DNA from: Chlorokybus atmophyticus
Lineage: Eukaryota; Plantae; Mesostigma and Chlorokybus algae
Assembly (NCBI GenBank): GCA_009103225.1
Contig: RHPI01001037.1
Span: 124,001-188,000 of the forward strand
Direction of reading: 5' to 3'
Length of the DNA: 64,000 nt
Under the pieces are notes generated by a model, which was not told the origin of the DNA, made no database searches, and saw only the letters and a list, made by a program, of their open reading frames with translations. The position numbers were made by a program, and so were the translations under genes. Below, piece after piece: positions 1,353 to 41,301 of this stretch (the first letter of the stretch is position 1; every line of letters begins with the position of its first letter).

Positions 1353-2310
1353 CAGAAGCCACACCATGCTGTTTTGGTCTATGGCCAAGCCCAGCAAGAC
1401 ACGTTGTTGTCGCTTTGTGAGTGCGCAACCGGTTATGCTACCTGCGTGGAAGCCCATGGCACGCTCGCGTTCCGGAGCATTGGGTTCATCCAATCTGCCA
1501 ATGATGCTGTCGAAGACCATGCCGTCGCCGTTATCGCGGAAGGCATAGGAAGCAGGTTAAGAAACCAGGATCAGTACTGCGCGACGAGGCTGGTCAGATT
1601 AATTGCAGGGTAGAAGTGCTTGTGGTCAGGCTTGATGATCGGTTCAAATGTGCGACCGGGGTCGAGGATGTTATCGACCAACAAGTTGTTGGGTCGTGTG
1701 GCCGAACAGTGGGCCGCCAGACTGAGTTCTTCCATGGTGGCCAGATTGGTCCACATTGGCTCGAACGCAATGGGCGCGTGAGCCATGGCGTGCGGTGTTT
1801 ACCCTTATGGGTGGCCCAAGATGGAACAGACTATACGGAAGTCTTGCTTCTCATTGCCTCGCCTATCGTCGCCAAAGTGCACATTCTCCACGACGTGGAC
1901 TAGAGGCCTGCAAATTTGGTGGTGCTGCAGCAGGTGTATGACTCGCATGAATTCCCAAATTAGACTGGAGCGGGGGTTCTGTAAGCCGCGTTCGGTACCA
2001 GCGCGCGAGTGTCCTTGGCACTCCCAGCCTGTAATGAGGAGGTCCACGTTACCCAGGGCCAGCAGATGGTCTTTTAACATCAGCCAAATGTCTTGCGGCA
2101 GAGCCTTCAGACTGCCGTGCAGAGCTAAATAAGGAAGCTGCTGTGGGTAGCGCTCATGCAACTGTCGTAAGCGATGGCGCACACACAACGGTTTGCGTGA
2201 CATGGTCAGGGTCACAGTAGTAGAAATGTTTGACCTCAACACCGGTGTACAGCACAGCTGCTAAACGGCTGCCGACTCCTCTGAAAAGCTCAACGAGTGT
2301 GATGCCTTGT
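1353..2310 (-). pseudogene. Retrotransposon-borne C5 cytosine methyltransferase (DNA_methylase fold), frameshifted
   Basis: Motif I LVELFRGVG, motif IV DLLITGWECQGHSRAG (catalytic Cys kept), motif VI HVVENV, degenerate motif VIII ..WTNL, motif IX ERERAMGF, motif X LLGLAIDQNSMVWLL. These are spread over ORFs 2154-2444, 1805-2242, 1571-1786 and 1017-1520. Confidence 0.85.
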
Positions 2311-5267: not shown

Positions 5268-5346
5268 TGTAACGGGAAGGTACATTATATAACCACAAAT
5301 CAACCATAAAAGCACTAAGTCTTTTGTGGTGGAGTGCGCTGTGACA
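5268..5346 (+). repeat. Extra 79-bp LTR of TRIM family 1
   Basis: TGTAACGGG...GTGACA, followed by a PBS-like ttggtattggag and then the next LTR at 5368. Confidence 0.85.
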
Positions 5347-5367
5347 TTGGTATTGGAGAGTAACCAA

Positions 5368-5898
5368 TGTAATGGGAAGGTACATTATATAACCACAAAT
5401 CGACTATAAAAGCACCAAGTCTTTTATGGTCGAGTGGGCTGTGACATTGGTCAACGGATTTTGAGACCCGGGTTCAATTCCTGCCTTGCACACGAATTCC
5501 GCGGTCGTTGTTTCTCGATCCAATAACATAACATCGTAAATGGTCAATTTATAAGTGCCATCATTGATAGGTCGCGACTTGCTTAATGGCAATCACGTCG
5601 GACTGACCAGTTCAGTCGGCGCGGCAGGACGCGACCTGCCCGTAGCGATGCGACCTGTGGGGCCGGCAGCGGTGCGCTTTTTGCGCGTTTACCGGTACGG
5701 GCCTAAAATAGCCGGTCCTTGGTCGTGGGGCTAGTGACCGACCCTAACAAACCCCTGGGATAATTCCCCAACTGAGCGTGGCAGCTGCCGAGGACGTCAG
5801 CATTTTTAGTGGGGGGGAATGTAACGGGAAGGTACATTATATAACCACAAATCGACCATAAAAGCACCAAGTATTTTATGGTCGAGTGGGTTGTGACA
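5368..5898 (+). mobile_element. TRIM family 1 (miniature LTR retrotransposon), complete copy
   Basis: 79-bp LTRs at 5368-5446 and 5820-5898 with TG..CA ends. PBS-like ttggtcaacgga at 5447. Polypurine tract gtgggggggaa immediately before the 3' LTR. 373-bp non-coding internal region. A partial internal region follows at 5899-6104. Confidence 0.9.
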
Positions 5899-6104
5899 TT
5901 GGTCATCGGAGCTTGAGAACCGGGTTTGAAGCCGGCCTTGCACACGAATTCCGCGGTCGTTGTTTCTCGATCCAATAACATCGTAAATGGTCAATTTATA
6001 AGTGCCATCATCGATGGGTCGTGACTTGCCTAATAACAGTCGCGTCAGACTAACCAGTTCATTCGGCGCGGCAGGACGCGACCTGCCTGTAGCGATGCGA
6101 CAAT

Positions 6105-6638
6105 TGTCACAGCCCACTCGACCACAAAAGACTTGGTGCTTTTATGGTCGATATGTGGTAATTCAATGTACCTTCCCATTACATTCCCCCCCCCCCACTT
6201 AAGAACGCTAACGTCCTCAGCTGGCTCCCATTAATTGGGGAATCATCCCAGGGGTTTTTGCTAGGGTCGGTCGCCGGCCCCACGGGCAAGGACCGGCTAA
6301 ATTAGGCCCATACCGATCAACGCGCGCACATCGCGCCGCTGCCGGCCCCACAGATCGCGTCGCCGCAATAGGCAGGTCGCGCCCTGCCGAGCCAACTCAA
6401 CTGGTCAGTTCGGCGCGATTGCCATTAAGCAAGTTGCGACCCATCAATGATGGCACTTATGAAGTGACCATTTACGATGTTATTGGATTGAGAAATAATG
6501 ACCACGGAATTTGTGTGCCAGGCAGGCTTCGAACCCGGGTCTCAAGCTCCGATGACCAATGTCACAGCCCACTCAACCATAAAAGACTTGGTGCTTTTAT
6601 GGTCGATTTGTGGTTATATAATGTGCCTTCCCATTACA
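6105..6638 (-). mobile_element. TRIM family 1, complete inverted copy
   Basis: 79-bp LTRs at 6560-6638 and 6105-6183. On the minus strand: PBS ttggtcatcggagc, G11 polypurine tract, 376-bp internal region. Confidence 0.9.
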
Positions 6639-9600
6639 CGATGTCACAATGTCACACAGTGCTTACCTTGTTGCCAATCTTCCACTTGCTTGGGGAAGGG
6701 TTGCCAACGGTCGAGGTTGCTACGTCACGGCCAAATGCGTTTGGGTTGGGGGTTCCAATCGACTCTCTGCAAGCACAACCACGTGAGTCATGCTGCTAGC
6801 CATAAAAGATGCAACCCTCACAGTTGAGCGAGAAGCAACGTGCACAGTGCATCTAAAACGCATGCAATAAGTCACTGTGCCAGTCACGAAAGAAGCAAGC
6901 ATAAAAGTTTGAAGTTGAGCAAAAAGCAACGTGCACAGGGCATTAAGAACGCATGCATTCCAGCTTGCCCTTGCGACTGAAGTGTCAGGTGGAGTTGTTG
7001 TGATGGGCTGGGCATTAGCGCGGGGTCTTGCTGCGATTGGTTGCCAAGAGTGGTTGCTGCTGGTTGGCAACGGTCGCCTGGTTGAACATTAGGGGCAATG
7101 TGAACTTGGGGCGCCGACCTCCACAACGAGGTGCACCTACAGATGGACCACGAGGCATCTCTCTAACTCATAGTCGAGTGCCGCCTGCTTAGCTAATGGA
7201 GTCGCTGCCGCCTCCAACGCTGCCGCCGCCAGTTGGCCCGCACAAATATACGAGGCGCAAAATCGAAAATGAGGCGGTTTTTAACGTCTAGTGCCCCACA
7301 CTAAAGTCGCACTTATAGTGCGTCCTTATCTCCTATGGTTGATGGTACGACCTATGCATTCGTACCATCCATGCTTCGTACAACCATCGGTAACAATGTC
7401 TGTGACGTAACAATTATGGTACGACAGAGGCATCTCTCGTCCAACCCCAGCCATTCGCGTACAATGGCTCGGTCGTACCATCTGTGATACATTAGAGGCA
7501 TTGCTCGACCAGCGCTAATGGGAGTTAGTGTGCACTCACTTAAACAGCTTCATTGATGGCCTAATGATGGCACGCATGGGCATAAGGTCAATGACGGGGC
7601 GAATGTCAGGCATGGTGGACCTAAGTTTGACTACGAGGCGGAGGACCGAGAGGAGTAGGAGGCGGCGGCGGCGGCGGTGTGGCACATCTTGCGAGAAGTT
7701 GTGGTCAAGAGCTCAAGGAGCGAAGCCAGCAAATACCGAGCGCCACGTCATAAATCATAGCAGGCGTCAGCAATGGGGCTGTCCAACATGCATCACCAAC
7801 ATTGGACAAACCAGCAGGCAAGCCATCAGTGACCATCGTCACACAGAGAGCTGCTTGGTGGCTCGCTTTCTGCAATAAAGAGTGAATTAGGAGCTGCAGT
7901 CTTGAGAGTCCCTTGCCAGAACCATGCGGGACCAATTGCGATTGCGGGAACAAGCACAAAGGAAGGCAGAGTTACGCTCAACAGTCACATGCATCTCCTT
8001 GCAAGAGCAGTTTGCTTTTTGACGCAGTCCATGTGATACATATAGTGTGGCTGCAGGCCTCCACTATTCACCCATACCCACCCCACAGTCAAGCCGACAT
8101 TGCGGAAGCCAGAGCAGATAGACAGCTGGGCGGCGGTATGTTGTTGCCAATCTCGCTGTGCATGTTGACTGCATGCACCTCTTTTGCATGCTAGGATGTG
8201 CGCGAGCGTGCGAAGTCGCGCGCTCGTGCCGAATGAAGTAGGCTGGGTTTGAGCATAGGAGCGCGTGGCCATTCAACCGGCATTCAACTAGTAGTGCATC
8301 ATCAGCAATCACGCAGTCCATGCAATCATTCGTGCATTAACCAGCAATGACGCAGGTAACTGTTCGAAGCAATCAACTGACGACTGTGTGACGCAGTTGA
8401 CTATTGCAATTGCATTGTCGCAAGCATGTAGCTAACCCATATATGATTGGTTGACAACACCACAGTGCATGAGGTCCTGTTGGAGCTTCTATGCAAGCCC
8501 TGATTCAATCCCATCAACTGGTCCTACAATCCCACTTGGTAATGGGCGCTGCGGCAATGCGGCATTTAACATGCATATTGGCCTGTTAAATCCCGACACG
8601 TCCATTGGGGCAGTGGCGCATCCTGTGCCCATGGCTCACGAGCTCCGTGACGCAACTGCGATTGAGGGTGGCGGGGAGAGTGCACCCAATACCACCTTGT
8701 CAGCCCCCATGGCTTCCCCTGCTCCATGCAGCCCACGGGCCATTGAGGTAAGTTGCTGTCTTTTATAATTGGGCCTTGGTAACAATGCGTCAGGCACATG
8801 CATATGCTTATATTCGTCCTTTGCAACATTGTGAGCCATCATATCCTGGGTCCTACATACAGCCCCCCTTGCTGAATGCACAAGTAGTCTCACCTGCCGC
8901 ACCTGCTCCCCTCGCAGCAAGAGGGCATTCACCTTCCGCGGCACTAAGCCTTCACGTGCACTGCGGTCTCCTCCACGAGCAGCATCGGTGACTGCGGGGC
9001 AGCAATTCTTCTTGCCGCAACCGGCGAGACCACAGCATGATGCAACAACCGATGTGGCTTCTGCACCTACCTTACCCCACCCGCTGCAAGTTGAAGCCGG
9101 CAGTCGGCCCCAAGCTCAGGTACTATATTAGTCACTGTGACTCTTGCCGTAAACAGTTGGACACACCATTTGAGTGATGTGTGCGCATGCAGCAGGGGTC
9201 ACCACCTGCCAGCGAGTCATATAAGGAGCAGGCCGCAACCTGTGTACAGCTTACAGATTGGCTGCGTGACCGTGTCTAGCGCGAGCATAGGGAGTGGGTG
9301 CCACGGCCCGGCAGCGCAGTTTGGGTTGGAAATAAAAAGCCCCCAACTCAATCCTGGTGGTGGGCAACACCGCTCCTGATGAGCTAGAAGCACACTTTTT
9401 GCTCCTCAAGCCTAAAAGCACCGAACAATGGTCGTGGCCTATGCATGAATTGCCACCGGAGGTTACAGACCTGATTGGAGAGTTGCGGAATGGCGTTGCC
9501 AATCCCCCACTACCACTAGCTGCTTCCCACGGTGCTGTGCCAACGCCTCAAGCCTTCGTGTGCTAGGCAAGAAGTAGCGAATTGTTTTGCTCATCTTGCC

Positions 9601-16525: not shown

Positions 16526-16721
16526 AGTAACTGCAGCCTAGCGTGTGTATGCTCTTGCCGCTATGGCAACGACACTGTTCACTTCGCCCGCTAGTGACTG
16601 TGCAGCCCACTATATGGTGACAATGACAGTTAATGCCTTGAGGTGTAACAAAAATTGCAAGCTGCAATGTATTAATGCCGAATGCAAAACCACTCACTTG
16701 TTGCAAAGGGGTGAAACTATG

Positions 16722-17316
16722 AGTTAACAAGCTACTACCAGAGGAAGTGCTGTATCACACAGACTTTGCATGAGCAGATGGATATTTTACCAATTAAGTG
16801 AGTGAACGCGCAATCCAGTGAATGCTATGCTCCGACTGAGGATGTCAACACATTGCGGCAAGGCATCAAGTAACTCACAGGCAAGGCGATGTACACACGA
16901 ACATGCACACTTTCTTATGCGATGAGGGTTTCTTAACAACCGGGGCGGCGAGTCCACAGCTAAGTCGTTTCACAATCTCCATTCCAATGTTCACAACTTC
17001 ACCAGGTCATGCACTGAAGCAAACCGCTACTTATACAAGGCTGTCTAGTCAAGGCACGTCTGTCCAGCAATAGTTCGAACAATGCTAACGCCTACTAACA
17101 TGACATGGACAAAGCAATACGTCAAATCTTGATATAGCCGACCCGACTTCTAACTGGTCATCCATCGTGAGGTACCTACGAGTGGTGTACTCTGGAGCAG
17201 TGCTACTATTAGGTACCCACGAGTCATAGCTACAGTGCATATGTCAGCGGCAAGGGCAGCGCGTCGGCTGTAGTCATGAGCGATGGAGTGGAGCATCATG
17301 ATGGAGCGGCATGACA
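16722..17316 (-). repeat. ~595-bp LTR-like repeat, copy 2
   Basis: Homologous to 268-864. Lies ~200 bp upstream of the gag-like ORF start (16525). No convincing PBS or TSD. Confidence 0.7.
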
Positions 17317-20924: not shown

Positions 20925-23900
20925 ATGCCGATGGACGAGGATATGGAGATGGAGCATGTACCTTCATCAGTTCCAACGGAGGAGGCGCCGTCCGCCGCTA
21001 CGCTGAAACATAAGGAGAGGCATTACAGGAAGAAGGACGGCGACAGGGAGGATGCTGATGGTGACGGTGCAGGCAGGGAGGAGACGGATGCTGAGAGGCA
21101 TGAGCGTCATCAGCGCCGACGTGAAGAGAAGGAGAAGAGACGAGAGGAGCGTCGTAAGCATAAGGATAAAGACAAGGACAACGATAAAGACCGGCACAAA
21201 GACAGGTGGGTGTTTGAGGCGCGTATTGAAATACTGTCATTTGCCGTGCATGTATGGTAATTACAAAAGCCGCTCTGTTGTTGGCTATGAATCTGCAGCT
21301 CTTCGGTGTGTGGCATTACCGTGTTTGTGCCTGCAAGTATGCTGATTAGAACATGAACAGGACGATGAGCTGCTTGCATAGCATGATCGCACTGGAGAGC
21401 TGATGTTAGGTACACCACGCGCGTTGTAGTTCTGTCGCTTTGCTTTGCATGTGTGTGGTGTTACTGACGCACACCCTAGGCACAGTCGGAAGGACAAGCA
21501 CAAGGACAAAGAGCATCGTCATAAACGCAAGGATGGCAGCACTGACGTTATTGCAGCGGATGGGCTGAAGCCCGATGCTGGTGTCCCAGAGTCTCCAGCT
21601 GTTTCGGCTGCTTGGACTGAAGCTGAGAACTTGGCGGTTGTCAATGGCAAACACGATGGCGAATCATTGGAAACACGTCGTGACCAAAGGCATGTTCAGG
21701 AAAGGAATGGTCCAACTCATGATGAGCACATAAATCGCGATCTCGGCAGGGAAGCAAGAGCAAACAGCCGCGATTGTGTCGAGCGCAGCAGGTCTGCTTC
21801 ACGTGATGTTGTGGATGAACCAGCCAGAGAAGTCCGAGCTAGAGAAACTTCTCGGGAGAGAGGTGAAAGGAAGCGCGATCGCAGTCGGGAACGCAGCCGC
21901 GAACGAAGCCGCGACCGGCAAGACAGGTCTGCGGATCCTGATAGGGACGGACGCAGGGAGGAACGTGGTAGGGGCAGACCGCGAGAACGAGATGATGAGC
22001 GCCTTGAACGAGACAAAAGCCAAGATCATGGTGACAAGCGCAGTGAGAGGAAAGCCAGAGACGACATCTCTCACAGAGACAAAAAGCGACGACCGGAAGC
22101 GCATGATGACAGCAGAAAGCATCAGCCTAGCAAGGAAGAAGTTGCTGTACCACAGGTCTGCTTGGCCATTTGCTGCATATCGTGTACTTATGCCGTGTAG
22201 GCAGCGCACTCATCAGTGTCAACTGCAGGAGACACCAAAAGACACTCTCAGTGCAGAAGAAGAACAGGCAAGGGTGGAAGCAGAGATCGAGAAGAGAAGA
22301 AAGCGAGCAGCGGAGTGGCAGGTGAGACAACATGTTGTTGTGTTGTGCTCATGACAGGATGACGTTGAGTAGGAAGCTGTGGGAAGGATGCGTGCCTGCT
22401 GTGCATCTTTACGTTGTTGTGCTATATATTAATCTTGCTTTTCCCCAGCGCATGAGACAGCAACAAGAGCAGGAGGCAGCCGCAGCACAGGCAACAGAGG
22501 AGCCCGAGGCAAACCGACAGCAGTGGTCCTTGGAGGGAGAGGATGAAGATGCTGAGGGTGAAGCCGCAGCTGCGGCCGCAGCTGATGAGACTGCTTTTGA
22601 TGATGCACGGTATGGATGTGCCATGTGACTTTGGTGGGAGGTGGTTGTGACACTTGGTCGTTGTAAGGGGTGATGTTTTTGCTAATTTGCTGGCTTCTAT
22701 CAGGAACTTTCCTAGTGTTGTCAAGCAAGAAGACGCCGGTGTCGCAGATGTCTTTATGACAGACGACAAGGCCACCTCACAATCAAAGGCAGCAGAAGCT
22801 GTCCCTGCTGCAGAGCCTGAGGATGATGTTGACCCACTCGACGCATTCATGGCTGCAGAGGTACTGCCAGAGGTTGCACGTCTGAAGGCAGCTGAAAAGC
22901 CAGCTGCACCAGCCGTTGCAAGCGTTAAGTCAGCGCCGCAAGCCCAGTCATCACGACGCGATTACTTTGTGGCTCCACCCAGCAATACTGCAGGTTCAAC
23001 GAAGGGTGCAGTTGTTTCTGAGGCGCAATCTGACGAAGACTATGCTACGTCTGAGAGCGAGCAGTCTGAGGGCGAGGATGAGATTCTGAAGAAGTTGACA
23101 AAGCAGAGCAAGATGGACAAGCTGGTTGCTGTTGATCATAGCACAGTGAGTACAGTGTGTGCACAGCCACTTACAGACACTGTGCACTTGTTCGCAGTCA
23201 CAGTTTACAATCAGATAGGCTTTTTGTGCATTCTTGCCGGTTCATCGGTGGTGATGTCCTGCAGATCAAGTATGAGGCGTTCAGGAAGGACTTTTATGTC
23301 GAGGCGCGAGACATACAGCGCATGACAACTGAAGAGGTCACCGAGTATCGTCAAGAGCTTGGTGGCATCAAGGTGCGCGGGAAGAACTGCCCAAAACCCA
23401 TAAAGACTTGGTCACAAGCGGGACTGCCGTCGCGTGTCTTGGACATTTTGAAGCGTAACAACTTTGACAAACCCATGCCTATCCAAGCACAGGCTATGCC
23501 TGTCATCATGAGTGGCCGCGATTGCATTGGCATCGCAAAGACTGGATCTGGCAAAACACTGGCCTTTGTTTTACCAATGCTGCGGCATATCATGGATCAG
23601 CCTCCGCTAATGCAAGGTGATGGCCCCATTGGCTTCATCATGGCCCCAACCCGCGAGCTTGTGCAGCAGATCTATTTTGACATCAGGCGCTTTGCCAAAG
23701 TGCTGAACCTGACTGCTGTATGCGTTTTTGGCGGCTCCGGCATAGCAAACCAGATTACAGATCTCAAGCGAGGCTGTGAGATTGTTGTCTGCACGCCTGG
23801 TCGCATCATTGACATTCTTTGCACCTCTGGAGGCAAGATAACCAACTTGCGAAGAGTTACATACGTGGTGCTTGACGAGGCTGACAGGATGTTTGACATG

Positions 23901-25568
23901 GGGTTTGAGCCTCAAATAACACGAATCCTGCAGAACATGCGACCAGGCAAGCAGACTGTCATGTTCTCCGCCACATTTCCACGTTCTGTTGAAGTCCTTG
24001 CCAGGAGGGCTTTGACCGCGCCTGTTGAGATTCAGATTGGAGGTCGTAGTGTTGTCAACAAGGACATCGAGCAGGTTGTGGAAGTACGCCCAGAGGATCA
24101 ACGGTTCCTTCGCGTGCTTGAACTCCTCGGCGAGTGGTATGAAAAGGGCAAGGTAAGCTGAGTCATGCTCAAGGTCATGCAATGCTCCAGCGTCAGTGGT
24201 GATCAATGGTTTTCTTGGGCATTGCATGATTGTCTGCACCGCAGGTGCTCATTTTTGTGCAAACACAAGAGAAGTGTGACACCTTGTTCCGGGAACTCCT
24301 GAAGCATGGATATGGATGCCTCAGTCTACACGGTGGCAAAGATCAGTCTGATCGCGAGTCTACCATACAGGATTTCAAGAGCAATGTGTGCAGTTTGCTG
24401 ATAGCAACAAGTGTGGCTGCACGTGGTCTGGATGTCAAGGAGCTGCGGTTGGTTTTGAATTACGATGTTCCAAACCATTACGAGGACTACGTGCATCGTG
24501 TTGGCCGCACCGGTCGCGCTGGCAACAAGGTATTAGCATTCACTGTGTTCACGATTCAGCACTTGCAGTTCCTACGCCTGAGAAGGTTTCATCAGCAGTT
24601 TGTGCTGCGCGCAGGGAACTTCAATTACATTTATTGCGCCAGACGAAGACAGATACGCACCAGATTTGGTGCAAGCCTTGGAGTTGTCAGGGGCATCCGT
24701 TCCAGAGGACCTTAAGAAGATTGCTGACGAGTTTGACAAGAAAAGGCAGGCGGGATTGGTACATGCCCATGGCAGCGGGTATGGTGGCAGTGGCTTCAAG
24801 TTTGATGAGCAAGAAGAGGAGGCACGCAAGCAGGATCGCAAGATTCTGGCGTTGGAGTATGGGGTTGCCTTGGGAACAAGAGATGATGAAGACAGCGATG
24901 AGGACGATGAGGTGTTTAAAGCTGGCACCTTGCAAGAGAAAGCTGAGAAAGAGCGCCTTGCTGCAGCCGCTAAAGCTCAGAGCGCGACTCCGGCGCCACC
25001 TCCTGACAGCATGGAAGCAAAGGTTGCTGCCGCGCGCGCAATGGCAGAGCGCATTGCTCAACAACATGCAGAAAGGGCCAAGACGAATGCAAATGCACCG
25101 AGAATCGCTCAGTTGCAGGCTCAGCAAGTAGCATTGCAGGGCATTCTAGATTCAGAGGGGCCGGTCACTCAGGCTGCCAAGGCTGCTGCTTTTGCGGCTA
25201 TGATTACTGTGAAAGCAGAGTTGGGTAAATTGCTTGAAGAGCCCGAAGGAGGGCATGAAGCAGAAGTTGAGGTCAACGACTTCCCACAACATGCTCGCTG
25301 GAAGGTCACACACAAGGACTCGTTATCTCAGATTACCGAATACACTGGGGCTGCTATTACCACTCGTGGGCAGTACTACCCCACCGGCAAAAACCCACCA
25401 CCTGGCGAACGCAAGCTGTACCTTCTTATTGAGGGTCCTACTGAGATCAGCGTCAAGCGTGCCAAGGCTGAGATCAAACGCATACTTGAGGAAGAGACAT
25501 CCAAAGTTGCTGGAGCTTTTCCCGGCCAGCCCCAGCTACCTGGACGCTACTCTCTTACAAATGGCTAA
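20925..25568 (+). CDS. PRP5: DEAD-box RNA helicase PRP5/DDX46 (RH42-like), multi-exon
   Basis: Arg/Glu/Asp-rich N-terminus. Helicase motifs [61 protein letters not shown]-terminal [31 protein letters not shown], typical of PRP5. Confidence 0.96.
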
Positions 25569-31970: not shown

Positions 31971-32619
31971 GGTTGGTGCCGCCAGACCACCGACCGTTGG
32001 ACCATTCAAATCACTGGTACGGGTAGTACCATTGGTAGGTTAAATAGAATTTCGAAAACTTTCAATCGCCTCATCATGTCAACTAGCCTAGTTGAACTAG
32101 GGTAAGATCGCCTTACTCCGGACACTTTTACGGGCAACGGTGCTGTCAGGTTTGTGATATGGTAAGATGTGTGATTTTTTGTGTTTGTATAAATGGGCAG
32201 TTGGGCTGTCTGATGTCGTTGATATAGCATTGTTTGGTGCAGTGCAGCGTCAGCTCTGCGCCCCCAAAGACCAGTGTGTACTGACAGGCGGGTAAGATTG
32301 GCTGCTCATAATTTTGGACGGCCTGTTTTGCGTGCAGTGTTGGTAAGGTGGTGATGTTGGTGGCGGTGGGGGTGGCGGGAGAGTGCATGGCGTGAGTTGT
32401 GGGTCATTTGCAAGCAAGGCGGGCCGGCGTGGCAGTGGTTAGCTAGTCTTAAGGGTAAGTGCTAGGCATGCATGCAAGCTGTGTGTGTGCATGGTTGTGT
32501 GTTGTGTGCATAGTTGCATTGCACTGTTGCACAGTGTACAAGGGTTGTTATGTACAAGGTCTGTTAGTCTAGACGGGTAGTTGGCTATTAAAGTTCTGCT
32601 CAGCTAGCCACTGGTAGTG

Positions 32620-35340
32620 ATTTTGTACACGCATAGCAGCCTCATGCGCAGCTTGTTGCCTTGCTGCCACCGCTGCCTTACGTGCTTGCTCCGGCCTTGC
32701 AGCCTTCAGTTTGGCCTCCTTGACGAGGCGCTTCCCCTCAGCAAGCGCTGCAATTTATCCTAAATCGTGACAGACCTCACTCATGGTAGCGTCTTTTGCT
32801 ACCATAGCCTAGTGGTTGGAGCCCACTTGCTACAATGGTAACGGAACTTGACGTCACAGGTTCAATTCATGCAGGGGACTGAGGCAGATTTAAACCTTAC
32901 CTTGAAGGCAAAAAACATTTAGGGCGGCTTTGTCACGAATTGGGAATAAATTGTGACAGACCTCGCTAATGGTAGTGTCTTTGAGTACCATAGCCTAGTG
33001 GTCGTGCCCCAATCGTTACAATGCTAACGGAGCTTGACGTCTCAGGTTCAATTCGCGTAGGGAACTGAGGCAGTTCCAAGGCAAAAACAAAAACATTTAA
33101 GGCGGCTTGCCCTAGGCTGGGCGCGGGATCACGACCTGCGCGGCGAGCCAGTTCAACCTAAGGCCGCGCGAGCGGTCGCGCTGCGATGGCAGGTCGCGCG
33201 GTGAGGATGGCTGTTCAGTCGGTCAGGACCGTTCATAGGCCAAATCCAACAGGCCGCGTGCACACCGATCGTGGTACGGCCGTGACCACGGCGACGTGGG
33301 CTAGTGCTCATTGTAGACCCCATGGGTTCAATTGGGGAGGAATGTCACATTTAGGATAAATCGTGACAGATCTCACTAACGGTAGCGTCTTTTGCTACCA
33401 TAGCCTAGTGGTCGGAGTCCACTTGTTACACTGCCTTGGCGGCGTTAGCGACCTTACGCAGAGCCGCCTTCTTCAGCCTTGCCGCCTCTTTGGTAAACTA
33501 CTGCTTCGCCAGCTCTTTCATCCTTGCAGCTGCTACTTCCTTGCGTTGTTGCTCAGCCTGCTCCTTGGCTAACTGTCTGTTTTTTTTGGCCTGCAGGTAG
33601 CGAATGAGCTCTGGCGAGATGAGAATGCAGGCGCCATCCAGCTTGTGGAACTCCTCTTCCTCCTCCTCCTCTTGAGCCTCGCCCCCCCCGTACTCCTCCT
33701 GCCATGTTGACTGGCCTGCATCCAGCAAAGCAGCAGTAAGGGCATCCCCTTGCAGAGGTGGCTGTGCTGCATGCTCTGTGATGTCAACTCTGAGCTGGTT
33801 GTCCAGTGCATGCCTGTTTCCTGGCCACAGCCCTGCACAGGTGTTAGTCTCGTGTGTGTATGCATTTGCTGTGCTTGCATGTGTGTGTATGCATTTGCTG
33901 CCTCTCACCACATGCTTTTAAGCCATTCGTTATGTTGGTATAGGACGTTGCCAGCATGAAAGGCTTTGCAGTCAACTTTACAAACTTACCCTTCGTCATG
34001 CGGTCTAGGTTGTTGTCTGCCTTATGCTTGTGGTGCTCTGCACGGTAACAAGCCTTGAAACTGGCAAAACACATTCAAGACTTGCATAAGTGGAGGTAAA
34101 GTTATACATAGTGACTTGGTTGGTGTGCATGCCTTTGTGTGAATTGAATTGTGTGTGAATTAAATTGCCTGCGTGTGATTTGCTAATCTGCATTGCGTGT
34201 GGCAGGTGGGGGGCAAGAGGATGATGTGTACACCGCGATCTCTGGCTCTGATGATAAGGTCTAGCTGCATTCTGCTGCTGTGGCCATTGATGACGAGGTT
34301 GCAAGGGTTGTCTATGCTGGCACCACCAGGTACCCACTTCATAAAGTGCTCAAAGCAGGCTGCAAAGATCTCATTCGTCATGTAAGCGTTCTCCTATTTC
34401 ACACAGCACAGGGTGAGCATTCAGAGCTCGCATGGCACAAGCACAGCACTGCATATGCGCCTGCATGCCAACCATGCTGCTTATGGGGGCATACCGTATG
34501 TAGTCCTTTGTCCTGCGTTGGCCCTTGAGTATGTATAAGGGGGGCATGCTTGTCTCAGCAGCAGACATATATGCCATAATGGGGATGTGCTGATGGTTCC
34601 CCATCTTCATATGAGAAGGGTGATTGTACCCTCTGGGTGCAATCACTTTTACAGTGCCTACATATGTGTGCATTGTCAGTCTTACACTACACGGGTGCAT
34701 GAATGCCATTGCTAACATGTGCTATGCTAACCTAGGTTGTCTGGCTCCAGACCTGTCTCATCTGCATTGAAGATCCTCCATGCAGGGATGTCTAACTCCG
34801 GCAGCGGAAGGTATAGGTCAAAGAACTTGTCAGCGTTGCTACGTGTGGCAGCCCTGTGGTGACCTTTGTCCAGCCCCTCAGCTACTCTTCGGGTCAAGTT
34901 TTACTTCTTGAAGTAGAGACGGCACCACTTTGGTCCAAGCAGCAGCAGTTTGCCAAACCTTTGCAGTCTCTCTTCATCCCCCCTCAGCAATTGCAACACC
35001 TAGTAGGTAAGCAATGAAGTTAGGTGAATTGCTTGCTTTGCACAACAAACTTGCATTAGGCATAACACACTTGCTTGTCGTTGCAGAGCGAACACTGTGG
35101 GATCATGATCAATGTGTCACACATCTTGTGCACCCACTCACATAACTCGCGCTGCTCAGCTATGGTCAGGATGGCAGCCTTGCCAGGGCTGCAAGGACGT
35201 GTGAGCTTGTCTGGGTCGTACAAGTAGACAGACAGGGTGCTACGTGGCACCCCAATGCTAATGACTGCCTTCAAGGCAAGTTGCACGAGCAGCGATACCA
35301 CTCCTGCCTAGATCTGCTTAATGGCCTGAGCAATTTGAGC
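32620..35340 (-). pseudogene. Intron-containing pogo-type DDE transposase pseudogene
   Basis: HTH GVPRSTL..EQRELCEWV, RIFNADETG (first catalytic D), SMPPLYILKG, LVINGHSSR (second D to N), ILLPPTCHT..QVLNV..FASFK (third D apparently N), and a basic coiled-coil tail. Contains stops and a TRIM insertion. Confidence 0.85.
32752..33430 (+). mobile_element. TRIM family 2, tandem/nested structure: LTRa(5'-damaged) - partial internal - LTRb - internal - LTRc
   Basis: LTRa ends at 32834. LTRb 32931-33020 and LTRc 33343-33430 have TGTCAC..GTTACA ends. PBS-like atggtaacggaac / atgctaacggagc. PPT ggggaggaa. CTGC duplication at 32748-32751 and 33431-33434; removing the insert restores the transposase frame AAKAALAEGKR. 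Confidence 0.9.
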
Positions 35341-38828: not shown

Positions 38829-41301
38829 CTTATTTCTTTATATATCTAAATTGGCGTGTGCTCTATGGCAACAGTGGTCAGGGTAGCAATAGTATAATGT
38901 TTATATAATTGAGAGTGTTACTATAGTGACAAGTCCTTTCTGTGTTATTCTCTGTTTTAACAAAAAGTAATCATTTAACTTATTTCAAAGTTTTGAACTG
39001 GTTGGAGAGGTGTCGGTAATTCATTCCGTTTCCTTTGTTATGGCGCGCTGCGTTTCACTTCAAAACTTTTCGAGCTTTTCAGATGGGTTAAATATCGCGT
39101 TAATCTTTGGCGAATTTGATAGCTGAATCAATGCACTCTGATTCCAAAGCGTGCTGCATGCACGGCTCTAACCAGATTGTCTATGAAATCAGATGCAAAT
39201 TATACGTCTTGTCAACGATGAAGTCCAACGATGTATTGCCTACGCTTTTTGTTACCTATTTTTAACACGTACAATCTTTGTCACAATGTTAACATTATTG
39301 CAATTGTGTGCCACACAATGCAGTGCATGCATACGCTGGTTGCGCTCAGCTCCTCGGCACATGTGGCATTCATGTTGCGTACACCAGCGGCATTGACACC
39401 AATAAATGCCACACATATCATGTACAATTATATTGCTTTTATTGGTACCGGTAACACTGGTCCAATGTGCCTCCGAATATGCAACACCATTTTAATATAC
39501 ACAATGTCGTTGTAATTTGATATATGACACTCCATTGATTCAATTGGATATGCTGCAATTGGCTCCTAACTTAGCAGCTTGGCATGCTTTAAGTCATGGT
39601 GCACTGGCAGTGCAAGTGTGGCAACGCGTTATTGAGCTTTGGGCTACTCTTTGCATGCTAAAGGCCGACACGCAAGACGTGGCGCCTTCCCCGAGGCCGA
39701 GCATATCACCCATTCACAACCACTACCCTGCTCTTACTCGCCACTGACCGCGGCACGAGTTTGAGTTTTACCACATTGTTGTTCTAATGTCACTTTGCCC
39801 GCCACAGCTTGCGTTATGTAACATTGGGCGTTATATAAAGCCCAATGTTACATGGTGGTGTCCTGTTCTTGCGCCCCCCGCCCCCCGGGTTGTCTATGCT
39901 GGCACCACCAGGTACCCACTTCATAAAGTGCTCAAAGCAGGCTGCAAAGATCTCATTCGTCATGTAAGGCGCCNTTAAGAATTAAAGTTGGCGGCAATGA
40001 CGGTGCGCACAAACGCGCCGTTGTGGCAACCACAACCGCACGGTTGGTGTAACCACAACCGCACCATCTGGGTGACCGGAAGACAAGCTAAAGACAACAT
40101 ATGGTGAAAGCGGTTGCATGCATATGTCAAGCCTGTGTGCTTATGCTTTGGCGGGATGTACATATGCATGCACAACAGTCTTTCATGCCCACCGGTTTCA
40201 CTCGTTTAGCGTGGTAAACAACACACCCTAAGATTGTCCACTTGAGTACAACCGGAAAAGCAAGGCCACTTGGGTGCAATATGTATTGTGCACACCTGTC
40301 GAGTCTACACTTAAACGTTTAAGGATAAGGTCAGCAATGTAAATAAACCTTTCAAAGAACTTGATAGCGAACAATGTCGCCAGAATGTAATACTGCATTG
40401 CATGCTACATGTTACCGGTACTTGTTGCATCAACCTGCATTTGCAGCTAATATATGGATGTATAATAACGCACACAATATCGTATGTTTGCGAAACGCTG
40501 ACTTGCACAGCTTACCTCACGATCGTGATGCTTCCTGAAGCATCCTCACAAGCATTGTACAATGACAACACACACACGGTGGTGATAATGCCCCCCCCCC
40601 CCCCCCCCCCCCCCCNGGAGGGGGATCCAAAGCGATGCTTCGGTGTTATTGCATATAAATGCATGACATTATATCCCATTGAGTGCGATGTGTACATGTT
40701 ACCTTGTCTCTTTACATAATGTTAACTGGTAATGACTCTCATGTATTACTGCGCTACACGAGTTTGGTATATGCTTATTCTGATCATGTACATTATAATC
40801 TCTCAAACACAACATGGAAAATCGTGTATCTGATTACACATACATTCAATCCATGATGCAACAGTTGCAATGCACAATGCCATTGCGTAAAAAGGGCCGC
40901 GGTTGTCCACTAATTATTGATGCAATACATATCACCTCAACACTCTAATGTATTGTGACTGCCCACTTGCGCAACCACACATTGACCCACTAGACTAGTC
41001 GCATTCCCGAACAGACTTGCGGTCAGCGTGTATGTTGTTGACTATCACATGACTCGTTTCATCAAGGCAATATGGTTCAACTAGCCACTCAAGGCAATGC
41101 GGAACACTCGTCAGCGCATAAGAATGATTATGTACATGAACCATACACAGACGCCAACACATAGTCTTGGAGATTTATGTACACTAACTACGCTGTACAA
41201 ATGTCAACCGCTGCCAAACAAGGCGCATAAAACCGTAGACCAGGTAGCGAGCTACTTATGCAGACAAGACTTGAGCTACTTTCACAAGACGACTAAGTAA
41301 T

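Follow-up and report, generated by a model that had tools for sequence, protein, structure and literature searches.

A damaged composite element, very probably a TRIM, in Chlorokybus atmophyticus with a predicted tRNA-type promoter layout divided between LTR and leader

Does a short stretch of repeats in the green alga Chlorokybus atmophyticus represent a retroelement, and can the tRNA-type promoter boxes recognised in it be part of a Pol III transcription unit that crosses the border of an LTR? The locus lies at positions 32752–33430 on the plus strand of the window, by which we mean the whole stretch of 64,000 nucleotides that was analysed (contig RHPI01001037.1, positions 124,001 to 188,000). 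We conclude that it is very probably a dead, old and damaged copy of a non-coding TRIM, for which the enzymes would be supplied by an autonomous LTR retrotransposon. The best explanation overall, favoured by the sequence features described below although with less assurance than the assignment to TRIMs, is that the element has a type 2 Pol III layout split over the LTR and the leader. We accordingly read it as a candidate TRIMp3, i.e., a TRIM of the Pol III-promoter kind (Kojima 2024). We refer to it as family 2, since the same window also contains a family 1. Its parts and the surrounding sequence, in coordinates of the window, are as follows.

32748–32751, plus strand: left copy of the target-site duplication, CTGC in direct reading
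32752–32834, plus strand: LTRa, the 5' LTR, without its first 5 nt; the loop of hairpin 1 reads TCC instead of GGA
32783–32805, plus strand: hairpin 2 of LTRa, with 8-bp arms and the loop GTCTTTT that includes T4 (32794–32797)
32805–32815, plus strand: A box of unit a, matching TRGCNNAGTGG at 11 of 11 positions
32835–32930, plus strand: leader I1 (PBS, B box and tail), 90% identical to I1'
32836–32847, plus strand: putative PBS of unit a, with TGG 1 nt past the LTR end; homologous to the family 1 PBS
32859–32868, plus strand: B box of unit a, downstream of the PBS (23 nt from its TGG) and of the A box (43 nt)
32931–33020, plus strand: LTRb, the internal, older LTR copy; A box intact, T4 changed to TTTG, the region after it altered
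33021–33108, plus strand: leader I1', with a degraded PBS (TGC for TGG) and the second B box at 33045–33054
33109–33342, plus strand: I2, the unique internal region, GC-rich, ending in a B-box-like motif and the purine tract
33334–33342, plus strand: polypurine tract of 9 nt, directly before LTRc
33343–33430, plus strand: LTRc, the complete 3' LTR (TGT..ACA), with hairpins 1 and 2, T4 and A box
33349–33361, plus strand: hairpin 1 of LTRc, with an AT-rich loop
33431–33434, plus strand: right copy of the target-site duplication
33435–34897, minus strand: decayed DDE_1 (pogo-like) transposase, identified by Pfam, Atlas and reading frame, with a K/A/E-rich tail that continues at 32560–32751

The framework of the 679-nt element is formed by three direct repeats of about 88 nt each with TG..CA ends, and the order LTR, leader, LTR, leader, internal region, LTR makes it a composite. 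TGT opens and ACA closes both LTRb and LTRc, and LTRa has kept the ACA end. A polypurine tract precedes LTRc; none is found before the internal LTRb, which leader I1 directly abuts. The longest ORF, of 57 aa, is a spurious one in the internal region, and a word search returned no protein relatives of it.

LTRa and LTRc are 89% identical over 82 nt, and on this ground the copy is called old. The identity of LTRb is lower, 77% to LTRa and 79% to LTRc. Judged from these values, LTRb is the outgroup of the LTRa/LTRc pair and older than the outer LTRs, which makes it probable that the divergence of LTRb came first and that the composite was then copied as one unit. Family 2 is known here from one locus: no other family 2 copy was found in the window, where an nhmmer profile built on five units detected no further unit, and pattern scans of metagenomes gave no further copies.

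The initial annotation described a clean target duplication inside a transposase. The duplication is present as the direct repeat CTGC on both flanks, but it is not quite clean, because LTRa lacks its first nucleotides and a repeat of only 4 bp may also have arisen by chance. The insertion into a transposase remnant is supported. The Pfam DDE_1 match for 34160–34381 is weak (E 0.069), the nearest Atlas clusters are DDE_1 in 30 of 30 cases (score 0.95), and excision of 32752–33434 yields one continuous K/A/E-rich reading frame on the minus strand; a search for relatives of the flank ORF found none. The insertion struck the tail of a remnant pogo-like transposon, and the element has since decayed.

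The promoter boxes were found exactly where they had been placed, with the 11-nt A box at 32805–32815 and 32991–33001 and the 10-nt B box, GGTTCAATTC, located 43 nt past the A box in each unit. A third A box occupies 33401–33411 in LTRc, and no B box follows it. The B box sits 25 nt past the LTR end, beyond the PBS. Both units and family 1 have retained the boxes, and the A box is perfect in all three LTRs despite the 21–23% divergence of LTRb. It falls within a block of 17 nt (32800–32816), the longest that units a and b share without a difference, and this block is unchanged in LTRc as well.

A loose pattern of an A box and a B box separated by 25–65 nt has four matches in the window, compared with 0.04 in Markov-1 random sequences, and all four fall within TRIM units. 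With relaxed settings, ARAGORN made a tRNA-like call for three of five units, as against 6 of 500 shuffles (1.2%). At default settings, it reported no tRNA in family 2 or family 1 and no tRNA gene in the window, and Rfam gave no match to either family at gathering thresholds or up to E 10. It should be noted that, as no tRNA model matches, the term tRNA-like depends on the boxes and on relaxed scoring. Pol III transcription of the element is plausible; whether active relatives would be transcribed by Pol III we regard as evenly balanced.

Some further readings of B-box motifs were rejected. The A box lies downstream of the B-box-like motif at 33325–33333, which is not significantly similar to the leader (p 0.07–0.11), so this motif was not accepted as a functional box. 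An origin of the B box as a copy of the primer tRNA made when plus-strand synthesis reads through does not fit, because the motif has the sense orientation and its register is off by 7 nt.

Family 1, at positions 5268–6640 of the window, includes complete two-LTR elements of 540 nt, and the claim that it has the same layout, with the A box in the LTR and the B box behind the PBS, was supported. The region of the LTR end, PBS and B box is similar in the two families (z 3.6–4.6), and the spacing from TGG to the B box is 23 nt in both. They also have in common the TGT..ACA inverted ends, the TGG 1 nt after the repeat and the 12-nt PBS site, and the GTCTTTT heptamer and the AGTGG core of the A box are likewise kept in family 1 LTRs. 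I2 is distantly similar to the internal region of family 1 (local alignment z 4.9 versus shuffles), and there is no detectable similarity in U3 (z 0.1). Since the module and the 23-nt spacing are common to both, the layout is inherited and not convergent. To treat the two families as independent support, as the initial annotation did, is therefore an overstatement: the module is homologous in both, and the related families count as one origin.

On the plus strand between 32700 and 33500, T runs of at least four occur only at 32794–32797 and 33390–33393. These are the T4 runs of LTRa and LTRc, and they do lie directly before GCTACCA. The internal region is free of T4, as had been noted, yet this absence has a chance expectation of about 20% over 592 nt and is not significant. 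At the equivalent position, LTRb reads TTTG, a loss of T4 that drift alone would be expected to cause in roughly 6 of 10 cases at such divergence. In family 1, one copy contains three internal T runs, including T5 runs that would stop Pol III.

Of the two LTR hairpins, hairpin 2 is intact in LTRa; the LTRc copy contains one mismatch, and the LTRb copy is degraded. Hairpin 1 (TGTCAC..GTGACA) is complete in LTRb and LTRc, and LTRa retains just the 3' arm of it. The predicted folding of the three LTRs is moderately better than that of shuffles (z −2.7, −2.6 and −2.0). The loop inversion seen in LTRa is real, but its core is just 3 nt, GGA versus TCC, between 5-bp inverted repeats. It was not accepted as a flip of the entire terminal hairpin, since the bulged C remains on the 3' side.

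The proposed transcription start directly after T4, at GCTACCA, is problematic. If T4 is the terminator, the base that follows it is the R/U5 border, and a transcript starting there would have no R with which to make the first strand transfer. Were the start a few nt further upstream, a micro-R would result. Pol III would then have to pass over a T4 among the first 10 nt, for which we know of no support.

The same start site underlies the suggestion of Tf1-like self-priming, in which the first 8 nt of the RNA fold onto the PBS and replace a tRNA as primer. The underlying match is correct for units a and c, where the 8 nt following T4 can form 7 of 8 Watson–Crick pairs with the octamer that directly follows the LTR. 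It is also a point in favour that, to our knowledge, the PBS fits no tRNA 3' end that can be named. A match of 7/8 is reached by 3–6% of shuffled LTRs. The complementarity is nevertheless not conserved, and the initial annotation had itself named such a lack of conservation as contradicting the idea. In unit b, 5 of 8 positions pair, and in the same register of family 1 only 4–5 of 8 do; the best 8-mer anywhere in the family 1 LTR gives 5–6/8, which is at chance level, being reached by 37–94% of shuffles. In the minimum-free-energy fold predicted for the 5' region, the 5' end and the PBS are not paired. Moreover, self-priming needs a start exactly after T4 and would thus leave no R. The duplex is short and mismatched, whereas that of Tf1 consists of 11 perfect pairs, and the likeness to the Tf1/sushi group amounts to a partial complementarity in one copy here that is kept neither in the other unit nor in family 1; Tf1 elements are, in addition, autonomous and transcribed by Pol II. 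Such complementarity was not found in Helenus by Kojima (PMC10886601). We therefore consider self-priming highly improbable.

Two other explanations concern the element as a whole. The locus might be no retroelement but a tRNA-derived (SINE-like) unit of 186 nt that was duplicated locally in tandem, accompanied by an unrelated third partial copy and by CTGC repeats due to chance. Two 186-nt units do stand head to tail, the canonical TG end is missing in LTRa, a single locus is seen, and the 4-bp repeat alone is weak evidence for integration. A duplication of this kind hardly accounts for a third repeat that lies 410 nt further on, has a purine tract immediately before it and stops precisely at the flanking repeat, nor for the TGT..ACA ends and TGG that recur in the complete two-LTR elements of family 1, nor for the restoration of the host frame by excision; its probability appears very small. 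Of more weight, although we still think it rather unlikely, is an ordinary TRIM transcribed by Pol II or by read-through from a neighbouring gene, in which the boxes are an inherited relic of a tRNA- or SINE-derived piece or serve TFIIIC binding, e.g. for chromatin or integration targeting, without driving production of the genomic RNA. This would agree with the misfit to every tRNA model, with the internal T5 runs of the family 1 copy, which would halt Pol III, with the non-significant absence of T4 from the element, and with the position of T4 at or before the start site, which is awkward for Pol III. The presence of LTR hairpins points the same way, as hairpins are also typical for the R regions of Pol II-transcribed retroelements. 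On the other hand, an LTR of 88 nt leaves about 40 nt for a Pol II promoter, and the boxes, their spacing and GTCTTTT have been kept across two families without U3 similarity, as has the A box across LTRs as diverged as LTRb.

With a Pol III layout, active copies could work in the following way. The 5' LTR and the leader would together hold the parts of a type 2 Pol III gene: a TATA-like, AT-rich loop about 30 nt upstream and, downstream of the loop, a short leader with T4, the A box in U5, the LTR end, the PBS, and the B box at a tRNA-like distance. The A and B boxes would be bound by TFIIIC; as this binding needs an LTR followed by a leader, the 3' LTR and solo LTRs would not act as promoters. 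Pol III would start a few nt upstream of GTCTTTT or within it, transcription would pass through U5, the PBS, the internal region and the purine tract, and termination would occur at the T4 of the 3' LTR. The resulting RNA would carry a very short terminal repeat, the micro-R, for use in the first strand transfer. The PBS would be primed by a host tRNA, and integration would generate the 4-bp duplication.

A broader idea, which we advance tentatively and think possible but not probable, is that placing the LTR/PBS border inside a tRNA-type gene could make a Pol III retroelement self-regulating. There would be a promoter only where the leader follows the LTR; one and the same T4 would be ignored at the start, in the 5' leader with a micro-R of less than 10 nt, and would serve as the terminator in the 3' LTR; and composites would be mobile only after the internal LTR had lost its T4. 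If this is true, the R would be the shortest known among LTR elements, and there would be a new answer to how one LTR sequence can be a promoter at one end and a terminator at the other.

Among known systems, the element can be compared with Helenus, a TRIM with a tRNA-like LTR (PMC10886601). They agree in being short LTR elements that are non-coding, in having a PBS, a PPT and a target duplication of 4–5 bp, and in forming tandem arrays; the tRNA-type A and B boxes of both are presumed to recruit Pol III, and neither codes for a functional tRNA. In Helenus, the whole tRNA-like sequence with both boxes is inside each LTR (120–323 bp), whereas the 88-nt LTR here has the A box only, the LTR end and the PBS are located between the boxes, and the B box belongs to the leader, so that only the 5' LTR with its leader would form a full promoter. 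Among plants, Helenus is known from Selaginella only.

Cassandra is likewise a TRIM with a Pol III promoter, a terminator in the LTR and tandem LTR–internal–LTR arrays (PMC10886601, PMC7215508). Its transcription has been shown, and its promoter is of type 1 (5S rRNA-derived) and lies wholly in the LTR; the boxes predicted here are of type 2 (tRNA), and the LTR border runs between them. Cassandra RNA begins and ends within the LTR and has a terminal duplication of 18 bp (PMC10886601); the terminal repeat of the present element would also be very short, with an R of less than 10 nt.

Resemblances to other small elements are more limited. The tRNA-derived SINEs (SINE2) resemble it in their internal A and B boxes with the spacing of a tRNA, in being short and non-coding and in borrowing their enzymes, but they have no LTRs, PBS or PPT, they are copied by LINE machinery, their target duplications vary, and an A- or T-rich tail usually terminates them. 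Retrozymes, the non-autonomous LTR elements of plants that carry hammerhead ribozymes, share with it the small size, the lack of coding sequence, the PBS, the PPT and the 4-bp target duplication; unlike them, the element has much shorter LTRs and no match to the hammerhead or any other Rfam family.

As a class, TRIMs with Pol III promoters received a name only in 2024, and transcription has been shown for Cassandra only. If the proposed layout is true, this early-branching green alga would show a second way to build such an element, with the promoter interrupted by the LTR end and the PBS, and the layout would explain the silence of solo LTRs and 3' LTRs. It would also allow a direct test of the minimum terminal repeat length for strand transfer. 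Elements of this kind mimic tRNA promoter boxes, escape tRNA finders and nest in transposons, which matters for the annotation of repeats and small RNAs in this genome.

In the window, no intact LTR retrotransposon with matching ends or a matching PBS was found that could be the autonomous partner. PBS-like motifs at 644 and 17079 were set aside, as they lie within an unrelated 600-nt repeat and not next to an LTR border. The window also contains a DDX46/PRP5-like ORF, whose best relatives are green-lineage and plant proteins with 72–73% identity.

The family 2 element (679 nt, + strand) has the anatomy of a TRIM, and it is a composite with three direct repeats (32761-32887, 32947-33073 and 33357-33483). 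Its parts are as follows:

32752-32834, + strand, LTRa
32835-32930, + strand, leader I1
32931-33020, + strand, LTRb
33021-33108, + strand, leader I1'
33109-33342, + strand, internal region I2
33343-33430, + strand, LTRc

Both LTRb and LTRc start with TGT and end with ACA, nine purines stand immediately ahead of LTRc, and CTGC flanks the whole element on both sides. The end of LTRa is followed after 1 nt by TGG, the corresponding site behind LTRb being TGC. The longest ORF of the element has 57 aa and no relatives. Both LTR hairpins proposed in the initial annotation were recovered in the predicted folds (z-scores −2.0 to −2.7), and a third predicted hairpin includes the A box's 3' half. In the loop of hairpin 1, described there as inverted in LTRa, 3 nt are flipped (GGA to TCC) between inverted repeats of 5 bp, but the hairpin as a whole is not inverted.

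LTRa and LTRc are 89% identical and LTRb is only 77–79% identical to either, which makes LTRb the outgroup to the other two; the leaders I1 and I1' are 90% identical. The simplest reading would be that the RNA copied last already held LTRb and I1' internally and that reverse transcription made the outer pair. The absence of a purine tract ahead of LTRb is consistent with this. Tandem arrays are known in Cassandra (PMC7215508) and Helenus (PMC10886601). The outer LTRs differ by 11%, which marks this as an old insertion and a dead copy.

The target duplication had been called clean and placed inside a transposase. The 4-bp CTGC flanks are indeed present, but LTRa is incomplete at its 5' end: its first positions mismatch the TGTCA found in LTRb and LTRc, and the element bounded by the repeat therefore begins 5 nt inside the LTR. 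Deletion of 32752-33434 nevertheless fuses the flanks into a single K/A/E-rich minus-strand reading frame, downstream of decayed DDE_1 transposase pieces, one of which matches Pfam DDE_1 with E 0.069; 30 of the 30 nearest Atlas clusters are DDE_1. On the basis of these matches and the rejoined frame, the location can be accepted if 'transposase' is taken to mean a pogo-like transposon remnant.

The A and B boxes of tRNA genes bind TFIIIC. All positions proposed for such boxes in the family 2 element hold: the 11-nt A box lies at 32805 and 32991, with an additional one at 33401, and the 10-nt B box lies at 32859 and 33045, with 43 nt between it and the A box in both cases. No B box follows LTRc. 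Since the A box belongs to U5 and the B box comes after the putative primer-binding site (PBS), a full promoter would exist only where a leader follows the LTR. A loose A box–gap–B box pattern occurs 4 times in the 64 kb, compared with 0.04 in random sequence, and all four lie in TRIM units. The 64-kb window contains no tRNA gene, and standard tRNA tools found no match in the units of either family; at 80% thresholds, ARAGORN gave tRNA-like calls in 3 of 5 units versus 6 of 500 shuffles.

Weak A-box-like GGCTAGTG and B-box-like GGTTCAATT motifs, about 20 nt apart and not significant, lie at 33298-33333 just ahead of the purine tract. A similar block occupies the same place in family 1, the related TRIMs at 5268-6640. 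The motifs may be what is left of another promoter unit. In both families, 7–8 bp can also form between the 3' portion of the PBS and the 5' portion of the B box (32842-32866, 33028-33052 and, in family 1, 6540-6520 on the minus strand); between the families the changes are one-sided only, and a conserved leader hairpin is possible.

GCTACCA directly follows the runs of four T (T4) at 32794-32797 and 33390-33393, and the element has no other + strand T run of at least four. LTRb has TTTG at this place, a loss that drift alone would be expected to cause about 6 times in 10. The reported lack of internal T4 is borne out over 592 nt, but chance would give it with a probability of 0.2, and in one copy of family 1 there are three internal T runs. 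For these reasons the T-run evidence, although in the right direction for a Pol III model, is not significant.

If T4 of the 3' LTR were the Pol III stop, the R/U5 border would be the base after T4. The initial annotation put +1 at this base; it does lie directly after T4, but as a start, with T4 as stop, it gives no terminal repeat (R) and the first strand transfer becomes impossible. A start a few nucleotides upstream, as in tRNA genes with 5' leaders, would give an R of about 4–9 nt including GTCTTTT, the loop heptamer of hairpin 2. A precedent is Cassandra, where Pol III both starts and stops within the LTR and thereby makes an 18-bp terminal duplication (PMC10886601). The weak point is an unsupported assumption, namely that Pol III would have to pass T4 within the first ten nucleotides. 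An internal LTRb with TTTG in place of T4 is what the Pol III model would require of the composite. CAA triplets at −10 to −3 enhance transcription of tRNA genes in land plants and in yeast (PMC13578239). By direct reading, family 1 has CAA directly before GTCTTTT and TATATAA about 31 nt upstream of that CAA; family 2 has an AT-rich hairpin loop 26–38 nt upstream of the heptamer.

Tf1-like self-priming had been suggested from a 7/8 complementarity between the presumed RNA 5' end and the PBS start. This match is real in units a and c (those of LTRa and LTRc) and arises in 3–6% of shuffled LTR trials. It falls to 5/8 in unit b and to 4–5/8 in the same register of family 1, where nothing elsewhere in the LTR exceeds chance. 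For the first 88 nt, the predicted fold omits the pairing, and its stability does not exceed that of shuffles (z −0.7 and −0.4). As the complementarity is not conserved, self-priming counts as refuted within the limits of the window; it also demands a start that leaves no R. The PBS differs at 3 of 12 positions from what we take to be the usual plant initiator-Met PBS.

The U3 regions of families 1 and 2 have no similarity (z 0.1), and clear similarity (z 3.6–4.6) runs from the end of the LTR across the PBS as far as the B box. Both families share TGTMAC..GTKACA ends, the heptamer, the A box AGTGG core and a 23-nt TGG-to-GGTTC spacing, and their internal regions are distantly similar (z 4.9). 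These similarities indicate that the families are diverged relatives with an inherited layout, a single maintained origin rather than two separate inventions. Family 1 (LTRs 79 nt, complete elements 540 nt) is the more tRNA-like: its A and B boxes start 44 nt apart, as in tRNA, and its D-arm and T-arm are able to pair. By direct reading, its LTR end falls on the D stem's 3' side, and the PBS stands where a tRNA has its anticodon arm. In family 2 the distance is 54 nt, with a U5 longer by 10 nt.

On the + strand, the family 1 nest runs LTR, 19 nt, full element, further LTR and partial internal region, interrupted at 6098 by a complete 540-nt minus-strand copy (6638-6099). Such insertion of one TRIM into another may reflect an attraction of the partner's integrase to Pol III-type promoters. 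The 64-kb window holds no autonomous partner for the family 2 element.

Helenus, Ajax and Cassandra carry a small-RNA promoter entirely inside the LTR and were grouped by Kojima as TRIMp3 (PMC10886601). The B box of Helenus is inside the LTR, whereas that of the family 2 element is outside, so it lacks the defining Helenus feature; it does fit the wider TRIMp3 idea. We found no description in the literature of a promoter split by LTR end and PBS.

Elsewhere in the window, an unclassified 600-nt repeat has two copies about 85% identical and 16.4 kb apart (about 270-865 and 16720-17315), each with a motif resembling the end of the family 2 LTR plus PBS (644, 17079) in mid-repeat, not at a border. 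An 82-nt stretch at 34305-34386 and 39887-39968, 100% identical with sharp ends and near N runs (about 35.4 kb and 36.4–37.1 kb), could reflect either a second copy of a transposon or an artefact of the assembly. An ORF at 1805-2242 (minus strand) matches C-5 cytosine DNA methylase (Pfam E 1.9e-08). The host gene at 23157-25568 (+ strand) encodes a DEAD-box helicase of the DDX46/PRP5-like type, and its downstream ORF (24600-25568) matches the KH_12 domain (PF23469); the helicase's best database relatives are plant and green-algal proteins (72–73% identity).
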